DNA of 63,764 nucleotides, filler included, from Octopus bimaculoides (Eukaryota): assembly GCF_001194135.2 (NCBI RefSeq). It is 8 parts of 7 records of this genome, joined end to end, with 100 filler letters (N's around TTAATTAATTAA, not from the genome) between each part and the next. Parts side by side here need not be neighbours in the genome. Positions count along the whole stretch, not along the records: positions 16,065 to 24,544 come from NC_069000.1; 7 more parts are not named here. One strand, given 5' to 3'. Positions 17,514 through 23,832 of this stretch are shown here, piece after piece. The notes beneath the pieces are model-generated. The model saw nothing but the letters and a program-made list of their open reading frames with translations, was not told where the DNA came from and did no database searches. Each line of letters begins with the position of its first letter. Position 1 is the stretch's first letter. Made by a program: the position numbers and the translations under genes.

Positions 17514-18535
17514 TCAGGCTGAGTAAAAAATAAGCAACATTTTGAGACATGAAATTCATCACAATATATTTCAACAATGCGGAAATTTTATTCATCAAAG
17601 TAAATACCATTGCAATCAACACATTTTTGCCAACAAGTTAGAAGTTTGTCTATTCCGGTAACATACAGATCTGGAGTTCTGGAGCTAATGAACTCTTTGA
17701 ACGCACTTTCAGCATCAGTTTGATTTTTGAATTCCTTCTCTCGTAGGAAACCATCAAGGTGCTTGTAAAAGTGGTAGTCAGTAGGAGAAAGGTCTGGGGA
17801 ATAAGCTGGGTGGGGAAGAACTTCGTAGCCAAGTTCCCTCAACTTCTGGAGCGTCATTAGTGAAACGTGTGGGCGAGCATTGTCATGAAGAAGGATTGGC
17901 CCTCTTCTCTTGACCAGTCTGGGATGGAGGAGTAGCAGTTTTGCATTCATTTTGGTAATTTCATGGCAATATGTTTCTGCAGTAATGGTTTTTCTGGGTT
18001 TTAAGAAGTTATAGTGGATGAGTCCAGCAGTACACCACCAAACCGGTCACCGTAACTGTCTGTTTGAAGAGCTCAAGTTTAGGGAAGGTTTTCGGTGCTT
18101 CATTTTGGTCCAACCACTGCGAAGAACGATTTTTATTATTGTACAGAATCCACTTTTCATTGCAAGTTACAATATGGTCGAGAAATGGAGCGGTCTAGTT
18201 ACGGAGAAGAAATTTACGACGAGCAAATTTCATATCTATGCATTTTGTGATTTTCATTCAAATCGTGTGGTACCCATTTGTCAAATTTTTTTGATTTTCC
18301 GATCGCATGCAATTGATTACAGGCAGTTTTCTGGCTAACTTGAAGTTCTTTTGCCAGTTCTCGAATAGTTTTACGTGGATCTTTCTCAATGATGGTCTTT
18401 AATTGACCGTCATCGATGACAGATGGGCGTCCACTATGCTCACGATCTTCAAGGCTCAGGTTTCCACTACGAAATTGTTTAAACCATTTTCGAGCTGACC
18501 ATTCACTGGTCATTTCCTCACCAAACGTTTCGTTG

Positions 18536-20148
18536 TGTTTTTTTATTACCTATAAAAGGCGTACATAGATATTAACGTCGTTTCGGAAGGACGGCACAAC
18601 ACAATTAAAATAAAATTATGATAACATGAATGAAAATGAAATGATATATGAAAATGTGCTACCTACCCCACCTCAGCAGCATCATTTATTTCCTTTTTAT
18701 ATCCAATTCCCTGTTGTTCCTCTAACTCTCCATTTTCTATTCCTTTTGGTATTTCCTTTAGATCACAAACCACTTTTCTATATCTCAAACTTTCTTTGTA
18801 ATCCATTACTTCTTTCATACGACCTTCCGACACCAATACGCATGCGGCCATATCTTCTTTTTTTACTTCCTTTCATATTTACAGTCCTTACGTCCTTCTA
18901 CTGGGATAACTTCTCTATCAGTCTCCGATCCACACCTTTACAGAAAACACAAGCATAACACACGGGAGGGGAGCCTTGTGATTTTTGTATGTTTGTATTT
19001 CTTTTTTTTTTTCGTTTTTGTGTCGGTGGGGAATGGGTGGGTTTGGTGTCTGCAGTCGGAGGGTGGGGTTGAGAGGGTGTGGGCGGGGTGGGTACGGGTT
19101 GAGGTCCACTTTGATTATCCTTCTTCCTCTTCCTCTGTTCTTTCCTTCCAGCTACCATCCATCCTTCCTCGTCAGTTTCCTCCTTCTCTTCCACCATTTC
19201 CTTCTTCACGACCTTCTGTGCATGCTGGTTATTTTGAGAGCAGTCTGCTCTAATGGCCACATTTGTAGCAGCGAGGGGTTCTATCCTCCACCCACACCTT
19301 CATTACTGTATCACCTACTGACAACGTTTCTGCCAGTTTCTCCATGTTTTCTACTGAAATTTGGATCAACATATCCAGAACTTTGCCTCGCCAATTCCTT
19401 ACATCTGTTTCTGTGGCTTGGAGTACGGCCACTTCCTTCTCATTTCCAAGAAGTACTGCCGCCACCATCCAAGCCACGTCTATTTCAGGGGGGATTACCT
19501 CCACCCTGACCCTGGAAGTTCTTCTTCCAAGGTATGTGGGTAGGAGGGTCACCCTTTCCGTCTTCATCGTATTTGCCGAGTGCTCCTTTGCCTTTTCTTT
19601 CTCTTTGAAATGCACAATAACAGTGCCGTAACTGCTTCCTCTGGCAAGATATGATATATCTTGCCAGATTGGCCTCAATGCCTTCTCAATTTCCTCCGTA
19701 GCCTCATTTTCAATTCTTCTCTCCTTGATTGAATATACTTTATAAACAATTCTGTTTTCTTCCATGTTTTTAAGCACCTCATTCAGTGGTGACAATTTCA
19801 CGTCACTACCATCATTCTCCAGCATTTTCCCAAAATTCTTTAGGTTTTCCAGACTCACCTCCTTCTTAGAGACACCTGCCACTTCTGCAAAACTTTTCCC
19901 CTTTAAAGAATTTTCTGTTTTGTTGATAGCCCTGACCAGTTCTTCCTCAGACGATGACAATTCTGTCGCGCCGACATCTCCGTTTCAGTCAGGTCGGAAT
20001 AAAAAACATTTCCAAACTCAGCCATCTCTCCTCAAAACGCTGAGGGACAGCACAATCATACAACAGCTTCAAAGCAGCACAAAACAATACAATACCTTTC
20101 AAAAAACAATAGCAAACACGAACTTGCAATTCAAATATCCAAAGCGAA
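18536..20148 (-). mobile_element. Element A: ORF1-only Tx1/L1-type retroelement (1.6 kb)
   Basis: About 190-nt 5' UTR, then a gag-like ORF1 (19960 to about 18663, frameshifted) with a damaged CCHC knuckle CYKCG..GHIRADC, about 125-nt 3' UTR ending ggtaataaaaaaacac. No ORF2 sequence is present. Confidence 0.85.
18663..19960 (-). pseudogene. ORF1 (gag-like, zinc-knuckle) of element A
   Basis: ORFs 19250-19960, 18898-19260 and probably 18663-18851 in successive frames. Shows RRM-like region, KVWVEDRTPRCYKCG and a basic/acidic tail EEGWMVAGRKEQRKRKK. Confidence 0.8.
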
Positions 20149-20158
20149 CGTTTCGTTG

Positions 20159-23100: not shown

Positions 23101-23570
23101 AAGTGACCATCTTGTGATCACTGTAACTGACCAGGTGATACTGTGGACACGTAACTATATCTTTATCTATTTTTCTAATTAAAATCGTATCTATATAAGA
23201 CTGCGAAGACCCGTCGCTATTTGACCATGTCTACAATGGAACGTTCGGGAATTCTAGTCTGTAGGGATCTACTAGCTGAAAGCGACTTAGTAGATCCCGG
23301 AAGCCAATGTTAGGAGGAAGAAGAGAAGGAACAAGTGGTGGTTGAACCTGTTTCACAGAAAAATCGAACACCAATGCCAGAAAAAGGGGAGGAGTGGTCT
23401 CTTGTTCAGAACAAGAGGAATATAAAATCACTCTCCCCCGAAAATGATAAAGATAAAAAAGAGACTCGTGTAACTTTAACAAACCTCAACCATCCCTCCT
23501 CAACACAGCAACGCAATCCAGCAAAGCACAAAAATCAATCCAGCACAGCAAAATTAGGGTTCAACGCGGG
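20159..23570 (-). mobile_element. Element B: rearranged Tx1/L1-type LINE carrying ORF2 but lacking most of ORF1
   Basis: APE C-terminal half (TWSNSDGSSQSYID...SDHKMV), RT (PGLDGLPYELY, NFRPIT, RQGCPLSPLLY), C-terminal GALPVRDKL..HG...SACPRC..LHAIAQC. It contains a 137-N gap and the YADD segment is deleted. Confidence 0.9.
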
Positions 23571-23832
23571 CGTTTCGCTGATCCGCGAGCAGTTGCAGCT
23601 GTTTTACGTTCTTTTTTGAAGTTGAATAGCAAAATTGCTCAAATATCGCGCTTGGACTGTTCCATTTCAGATGATTGTAACAATAGTGAAAAATATCATT
23701 GTTAATTTATTTATGCATTTGGGCTAGTCTATGTCTGTATTATCAGACAATTACAAAGAATTCAAAACTCTGCAAAAATCCGGTACAATTTTTTCGTGGT
23801 TTCAAACGCTGCTTACTTTTTACTCCACCTCA

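Follow-up and report, generated by a model that had tools for sequence, protein, structure and literature searches.

How did one short sequence come to stand three times in a single mariner transposon of Octopus bimaculoides, each time exactly at the edge of a retroelement? The question is raised by positions 17514–23832 of the window, by which we mean the whole 63,764-nucleotide stretch analyzed here (NCBI RefSeq assembly GCF_001194135.2; eight parts of seven records, joined with 100 filler letters between parts). The piece that holds the locus, positions 16065–24544, comes from NC_069000.1. Read on the minus strand, the order is mariner 5′ part, site, R (a long interspersed nuclear element, LINE, that bears a reverse transcriptase, RT), site, G (a LINE with open reading frame 1, ORF1, only), site, mariner 3′ part, and both R and G lie in the sense orientation of the transposase gene. 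The explanation we favor, with moderate confidence, is that one Hsmar1-like mariner copy was entered twice in succession, at one position, by a site-specific L1/Tx1-type LINE using target-primed reverse transcription (TPRT). The broader proposition, that the mariner received site-specific LINE insertion either in serial events or in a single event involving a site-bound family, we consider likely.

A pattern search of the piece 16065–24544 found CGTTTCGYTG at 18526–18535, 20149–20158, and 23571–23580 and nowhere else. The expected number was 0.03, and none of 100 dinucleotide shuffles reached three matches. All three copies sit exactly at the mariner/LINE and LINE/LINE junctions. On the minus strand, site copy 1 (23571–23580; CAGCGAAACG) abuts the mariner 5′ part and carries one A>G difference, site copy 2 (20149–20158; CAACGAAACG) is sandwiched between R and G, and site copy 3 (18526–18535; also CAACGAAACG) abuts the mariner 3′ part. 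When the two preceding bases are added, 18524–18535 and 20147–20158 are identical at 12 of 12 positions (AACGTTTCGTTG), and the remaining copy differs by one base (CGTTTCGCTG). The TT at 20147–20148 can be assigned either to the end of G or to a 12-bp duplication; a 10-bp duplication is favored for both inserts because R and G, aligned from the first base, agree by direct reading at 13 of their initial 23 positions. The duplicated sequence contains GC and is pseudo-palindromic, with inverted half-sites AACG and CGTT spaced by AAA.

The minus strand of the 10-mer is C AAC GAA ACG (C AGC GAA ACG in copy 1), which provides the codons (I)-N/S-E-T of the stretch ...AATAR-INETFGEEMTSEW... in the transposase. 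These codons fall inside the Pfam HTH_48 match (residues 5–54), where they are aligned with NINNAFG of an Hsmar1-type transposase, and the site corresponds to mariner nucleotides 253–262, in the part of the transposase gene that encodes the helix-turn-helix (HTH). A preliminary description of this DNA had given the same coordinates and sequences for the three copies, including the 12/12 identity with the preceding aa, had assigned them to these codons of the HTH region, and had proposed the same layout with both inserts (there called B and A for R and G) in the transposase sense; the analysis bore out each of these points.

The outer element is an Hsmar1-like mariner, complete apart from decay. 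It spans 17514–23832 and measures 1274 bp after subtraction of the inserts and two site copies. TA target duplications flank it at 17512–17513 (left on the plus strand, in the context ...CCCGAAAA TA TCAGGCTGAG...) and at 23833–23834 (right, next to the terminal inverted repeat, TIR). The 3′ TIR (17514–17554) and 5′ TIR (23792–23832), both given for the minus strand, are partners in a 44-nt inverted repeat with 75% complementarity, T(C/G)AGG..GAGTAAAAA.TAAGCA.C. The 5′ part of the mariner (23581–23832, minus strand) contains the TIR, the 5′ untranslated region (UTR), and transposase codons M-E-Q-S-K-R... to ...A-A-T-A-R; the 3′ part (17514–18525, minus strand) runs from F-G-E-E-M-T-S-E-W to the end and is degenerate, with frameshifts and stops. 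The conceptual translation matches HTH_48 (E = 8.6e-12) and Transposase_1 (E = 1.2e-21) in Pfam and is 60–64% identical to SETMAR/Hsmar1-type transposases over 99% of its length; its N-terminal 140 amino acids are 54% identical to an Hsmar1-type protein (P0124), and the mariner search returned no relative above 64% identity. A transposase with a Mos1-type HTH and a DDD catalytic domain, TIRs (about 30 bp expected), a TA duplication, and a length of about 1.3 kb agree with a cecropia/Hsmar1-like mariner.

Element G (18536–20148, minus strand; 1613 bp) consists of a 5′UTR, ORF1 with a CCHC knuckle (CYKCGH...C), and a 3′UTR of about 130 nt, with neither ORF2 nor poly(A). Its ORF1 has two or three frameshifts overall and is stop-free across its longest open stretch (19250–19960, minus strand), 236 amino acids that end in ...CYKCGH at a frameshift within the zinc knuckle. 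This ORF1 is homologous (E = 1e-32 to 1e-35) to the ORF1 located directly upstream of ORF2 in a LINE from Argonauta hians, locus L001, which itself gives a zf-CCHC match (E = 0.0037); as a query against the protein collection, G ORF1 retrieved 0 homologs by word sharing. Element R (20159–23570, minus strand; 3412 bp including 137 N) is the remnant of an RT-bearing LINE and comprises a 5′UTR with the start codon of ORF1, some 180 nt of unmatched sequence, the C-terminal third of an apurinic/apyrimidinic endonuclease (APE), a linker, RT, a zinc-binding C-terminal domain, and a 3′UTR. It has no ORF1 and has lost the first two-thirds of APE. The two elements are decayed to different degrees, R having about 10 stops in about 2.9 kb and at least five frameshifts.

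R and G are homologous at their 5′ and 3′ termini only. The shared 5′ region (R 23472–23543, minus strand, with G 20005–20092) covers 5′UTR and start codon, ...TTGAGGAGRGATGGYTGAG..., with a local score of 54 compared with 24.7 ± 4.1 for shuffles, and the shared 3′ region (R 20159–20273, minus strand, with G 18536–18635), ...GCC.T.TAT.GGTAATAA.AAAAC., scores 43 compared with 23.2 ± 3.6. Both elements end in ...GGTAATAA.AAAAC(G/A), without poly(A), immediately before the site. Because only the termini are shared, R and G are two distinct retrotransposition units and not a duplication, and because the ORF1 of G and the ORF2 of R match adjacent ORFs of the Argonauta element, they are complementary derivatives of the same two-ORF LINE type. 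R begins with about 100 nt homologous to the 5′UTR and start codon of G; it is therefore internally deleted with a genuine 5′ end and not 5′-truncated.

The 10-mer is mariner DNA duplicated at insertion. In relatives, the homologous 3′ end does not reach as far as the 10-mer but terminates in ...AATAAA(A)GAAATC, and the DNA beyond is unrelated: an (ATT)n tract in locus L002 and the target site duplication (TSD) TATTTTTAAAATTTGTA in L001. Copies 1 and 3 are both needed to complete the mariner reading frame. The alternative that the 10-mer is the LINE's own 3′ tail was rejected on this comparison of relatives. An AATAAA motif lies 5–8 nt from the LINE end. A conserved 3′ hairpin was sought in the R and G 3′ ends, which folded no better than shuffles. 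Scans of collections that do not include the source genome gave 0 matches to CARYRAAAYRTTTGGTGAGGAAATGAC, the site in its mariner context, among contigs from metagenomes, viruses, and prokaryote genomes and 0 matches to the junction of LINE 3′ end and site, AATAAWAAAACRCAACGAAACG, in viral contigs.

Two serial insertions could have produced this arrangement as follows. The LINE endonuclease would nick the bottom strand right after 5′-CGTTTCGTTG-3′, and the freed 3′-OH would prime cDNA synthesis at the RNA 3′ end; a top-strand cut 10 (or 12) nt downstream would then duplicate the site, so that the new copy has it at either end. The predicted nick context is a duplex containing GATCAACGAAACGTTTGGTGAG, cut on the bottom strand after CGTTTCGTTG and on the top strand 10–12 nt downstream. 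With intact mariner DNA still beyond it, the downstream site copy would serve as the target of the second insertion. R would have arrived first and G later: R is probably the earlier insert because it is far more decayed (the stops and frameshifts given above; TSD pair 9/10) than G (236 amino acids stop-free; TSD pair 10/10 or 12/12). Both elements would now be dead or non-autonomous, and G may have been mobilized in trans: an intact ORF2 protein encoded elsewhere in the family could have acted on it by way of their common 3′ end. More speculatively, the sense orientation may permit transcription from the mariner, and transcripts of a mariner-resident copy could run into the downstream site copy and anneal to the nicked site, which would give precise priming as in R1- and R2-type elements; read-through of this kind is expected because AATAAA lies so close to the element end.

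The predicted nick falls at the same phosphodiester bond in both insertions, and the far side differs: ATCCGC (mariner) for the first insertion and CGTTTTATT (the R 3′ end) for the second. Because the nick is the same despite a different far side, the duplicated segment and/or the downstream mariner DNA would appear to be recognized, as opposed to a mere attraction to an A-rich tail. Both predicted nicks lie just after CGTT(G), which would fit a single endonuclease cutting both strands. Site-specific insertion is also the most economical explanation, because a dimeric RNA, a template jump, or recombination between occupied mariners would all still presuppose a donor or another element at that very site.

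Several points weigh against serial site-specific insertion. There are two insertions only, at a single locus; the collections searched, which lack the source genome, yielded no further copy of R, G, or this mariner family; and the closest retrieved relatives (48–59% amino acid identity) are not in mariners. The order of arrival rests on counts of stops and frameshifts, and R may have been copied in an already defective state. The APE domain is mostly deleted in R, so nothing on endonuclease specificity can be read from this copy. Serial, sequence-specific insertion into a mariner, as first proposed in the preliminary description, stands as the best explanation for a site present at all junctions, and its generality is limited to two insertions at one locus. 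A more elaborate version would have a cephalopod L1/Tx1 lineage that independently became specific for the AACG-AAA-CGTT site in an autonomous Hsmar1-like mariner and operates as a split system of ORF1-only and ORF2-bearing elements with shared ends, stacking in sense and using the mariner promoter and the read-through site copy for priming; in all these parts together it is distinctly improbable.

A single integration of a dimeric template would keep the LINE family tied to the mariner site and reduce the locus to one event. The template could have been a read-through transcript of a stacked R-site-G pair from another mariner copy, or it could have arisen by an RT jump from the 5′ end of G RNA to the 3′ end of R RNA carrying 10–12 nt of read-through flank. 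Read-through into the flank is expected from the position of AATAAA, the middle and 3′ site copies are identical at 12 of 12 positions, and head-to-tail arrays occur among distant relatives, all of which would suit such a template. A template jump, however, needs an RNA that ends exactly 10 nt beyond the element, whereas serial TPRT yields the 10-mer at no cost; decay is very unequal, with about 10 stops in about 2.9 kb of R and none in the 236-amino-acid ORF1 stretch of G; and the 5′ site copy is mutated where the other two are not. We regard one event as unlikely. Rather less probable still is an origin with no sequence specificity, in which it was chance that put the first LINE into the mariner, and its 3′ junction then drew the second one in through an A-rich tail, a persistent nick, or open chromatin. 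Earlier poly(A) tails are frequent landing places for L1, R is A-rich at its 3′ end (AATAATAAAACG), and the closest relatives lie in AT-rich or microsatellite DNA and not in mariners. Against this, the second nick falls outside the A-rich run: measured from CGTTTCGTTG, it hits the very bond that the first nick hit, with a perfect duplication of 10–12 nt, and the GC-containing, pseudo-palindromic sequence that was duplicated (AACG-AAA-CGTT) is unlike the TTTT/A site of L1.

Mistaken assembly might have joined or collapsed two occupied mariner copies, one with R and one with G, and the 137-N gap within R and the wholly repetitive character of the region invite that suspicion. The gap lies inside ORF2 between collinear sides, however, and the junctions share merely 10–12 identical bases, with 81% identity over 43 nt, which is too little to mislead an assembler. 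We consider an artifact very unlikely; if it were true, two mariner copies would be occupied at the same site, and targeting would be the more strongly supported. It is hardly credible that the mariner transposase mobilized a composite with LINE cargo and so spread the stacked unit, the “riding” suggested in the preliminary description. In its favor, the mariner has kept its two TIRs and its TA duplications; against it, complementarity between the TIRs is just 75%, the transposase gene has decayed, and no second copy of the stacked unit was seen. The 6.3-kb unit is also far above the size for efficient mariner transposition, as mariners transpose well only at much smaller sizes. Serial site-specific insertion remains the explanation that we favor.

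The domains of R support its identity as a LINE remnant in spite of decay. The APE remnant (23084–23293, minus strand), the C-terminal ~72 residues including ...VSYSDHKMV..., aligns with residues 171–242 of the relative P0055 (E = 3.9e-15) and is followed collinearly by RT, for which the window copy gives an RVT_1 match (E = 2.4e-6). The RT region (21073–22502, minus strand) has lost the YADD box in an 11-amino-acid deletion and contains several frameshifts and stops. The zf-RVT-like C-terminal domain of ORF2 (20526–21092, minus strand) has a 6-amino-acid deletion in the finger and matches PF13966 weakly in the decayed R (E = 0.0084); the region is 48–55% identical to P0001, P0002, and P0003, all of which carry PF13966. 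The assembly gap (22503–22639, 137 N) lies inside ORF2, and the codons abut it on both sides, ending at 22640 and starting at 22502. Its sides align to consecutive ORF2 parts of relatives (to residue 369 and from 396 in P0055; to 281 and from 312 in P0004), so the same element runs on across the gap. The known bases around it account for 68 of 78 nt expected from P0055 and 80 of 90 nt expected from P0004, which leaves about 9–10 nt (three residues) really missing and not 137. The stretch of about 180 nt between the ORF1 start codon and the APE remnant (R ~23294–23471, minus strand) may be a deletion scar or captured sequence: nothing similar was found in G, the Argonauta element, or the rest of the piece, and an inverted ORF1 fragment was considered and rejected since similarity to ORF1 was not found.

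The best ORF2 relatives of R come from cephalopods, Argonauta hians (P0001, 48%) and Acanthosepion pharaonis (P0046, 37%), and two proteins from JGI contigs (P0002 and P0003) are 57–59% identical over the region covered; the RT search found no relative of R above 59%. P0055, a 37% relative that carries PF03372, is collinear with residues 7–788 of human L1 ORF2p (E = 4.7e-63, compared with 5e-24 for R2). The combination of APE, RT, and zf-RVT, a CCHC ORF1, and collinearity with L1 ORF2p places R and G, as judged by sequence, in the L1/Tx1 superclade. Repeat surveys of Octopus vulgaris and other coleoids name L1-Tx1 and no other L1-like group of LINEs (PMC13282606; PMC8967140), and the label “Tx1-type” is plausible for R and G. 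Searches for loci with an ORF2 C-terminal alignment gave none in metagenome or viral contigs and only relatives of 32–35% identity in prokaryote genomes, in tandem arrays of a mis-binned metagenome-assembled genome (MAG).

The Argonauta hians element (L001; BAAFZT010000001.1, 2885–8650) is a full-length relative with ORF1 and ORF2 intact. It has a 17-bp target duplication, TATTTTTAAAATTTGTA, at both junctions, in an AT-rich site beside a (TATT)n run. This locus is also stacked, with a second partial copy of the 3′UTR after the first and about 150 nt of DNA resembling a short interspersed nuclear element (SINE) between them. Further tails of the form GGCCCTTGTGGC..AATA.AGAAATC occur in its vicinity on both strands (1120–1207, 9881–9968, 10230–10317, 11036, and 11286), which suggests SINEs that share the LINE tail. 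The closest ORF2 relative (57% amino acid identity), in L002 (JGI 3300045642, Ga0486131_03187; 1994–2105), ends in ...GGCCAATAAAAGAAATC and passes directly into a long (ATT)n tract, a microsatellite that served as target or else a tail of repeats.

Head-to-tail arrangements were found among more distant relatives. A contig in ENA (L005; ERZ26052130 ctg11195c) holds a tandem array of complete LINE units of two ORF1 plus ORF2, with a 7547-bp period and 95% identity, in which each unit ends in ...GGTACAATAAATAATATC and the next directly adjoins it. At least 10 of the CAXXMW01 contigs L006–L031, labeled “MAG: uncultured Arenicella sp.,” are head-to-tail LINE arrays with a period of 6.4–6.8 kb and neighbors 96–99.8% identical. 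They carry a eukaryotic APE-RT LINE 93% identical to P0055 and are evidently host or other eukaryote DNA mis-binned into a bacterial genome. These arrays show a tendency to stack in the wider LINE group and have no bearing on mariners. Two entries labeled “Herbaspirillum sp.” (P0077 and P0241; MCP3653585.1 and WP_288064025.1) correspond to the zf-RVT portion at the C terminus of a LINE ORF2, 56% identical to R; their presence in a bacterial MAG and in RefSeq is likely to be eukaryotic contamination. A 5S rRNA gene (Rfam, 44.3 bits) lies at 10026–10146 on the minus strand of L004, about 1.6 kb downstream of a LINE relative with 45% identity, and nothing marks 5S rRNA as a target.

A further decayed repeat encloses the mariner and reads through on the plus strand from 16065–17511 to 23835–24544. 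By eye, its motifs ...RNLYTSILH..., ...GTAIEMKFA.SYANL..., and ...CITCPNCKENYIGE... resemble RT and GIY-YIG of a Penelope-like element; no significant Pfam match supported this identity for the flanks. A short (AAC)n/(GAC)n trinucleotide run occurs within the flanking repeat at 24198–24262.

If the LINE is indeed site-specific, the 3′ flanks of copies of both LINE families are expected to show an excess of CAACGAAACGTTTGGTGAG. The locus would then supply a short sequence, GATCAACGAAACGTTTGG, on which an APE-type endonuclease with a new specificity could be tested, and would represent a second, independent LINE specialized on mariner, in a mollusk and with a different site and mariner family from the known crocodilian one. 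It would also support the ideas that target change is easy in the Tx1 group and that abundant dead DNA transposons are safe landing sites for retrotransposons. For annotation, one class of nested mariner/LINE arrangements would be explained as targeted insertion and not as random nesting.

LINEs that target DNA transposons are already established, through Tx1L in Tx1D and through Tx1-Mar and SINEU in Mariner-N4_AMi, and the octopus case is likely to be an additional one. In the literature searched, whose coverage is incomplete and which leaves Repbase reports outside it, no report of LINE targeting of mariner in mollusks was found. Two positions of Mariner-N4_AMi are preferred by the crocodilian Tx1-Mar LINEs and their SINEU partners, for which TSDs sandwiched between tandem insertions have been described (Kojima, 2015; PMC4494074). 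The positions are near 240 in antisense or near 830 in sense, with the TSD AGGTTCCCATCAGCAT, and it has been suggested that precise priming by target-specific LINEs benefits from read-through or from co-transcription with the target (PMC4494074). Because of this precedent, mariner targeting is less new than the preliminary description assumed (PMC4494074). The octopus locus shares with Tx1-Mar and SINEU an L1/Tx1-type LINE landing in a mariner at a fixed position and orientation, tandem copies sandwiching a TSD, and a non-autonomous partner with the same target. It differs in that the host is an octopus and not a reptile, and the mariner is a 1274-bp Hsmar1-like element with a transposase gene and not the non-autonomous Mariner-N4_AMi. 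The site, CAACGAAACG, is at nucleotides 253–262 in sense, whereas the crocodilian elements use AGGTTCCCATCAGCAT near 240 antisense or near 830. The partner here is an ORF1-only LINE derivative, in contrast to SINEU, a SINE headed by U1/U2, and the preference rests on two insertions as opposed to hundreds for Tx1-Mar. Given that host lineage, mariner family, site sequence, and orientation all differ, the sequences indicate that the octopus case is an analog of Tx1-Mar and not a member of it.

According to a statement cited in PMC4494074, Tx1L of Xenopus laevis inserts at a specific site of the DNA transposon Tx1D. As with Tx1L, whose specificity is attributed to its APE-type endonuclease, the LINE target in octopus is another transposon; unlike the octopus host, Tx1D is a non-autonomous piggyBac-type element and not a mariner, and the octopus case is known from sequence alone. 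Christensen et al. are said to have shown the specificity of the Tx1L endonuclease biochemically in 2000. The rDNA- and repeat-specific APE LINEs, among them R1, TRAS/SART, and the Tx1-clade elements Keno, Mutsu, Kibi, and Koshi, resemble R and G in their precise, oriented insertion into a multicopy sequence and in having no poly(A), but their targets are host multicopy genes or microsatellites and not a selfish DNA transposon. G, in turn, is comparable with mammalian HAL1 (“half-L1”), which has to borrow its ORF2 protein from an autonomous relative: HAL1 is a proven multicopy family, whereas G, seen as a single copy (18536–20148), may be a one-off deletion, and in each case ORF1 and the element ends are kept and ORF2 is gone.

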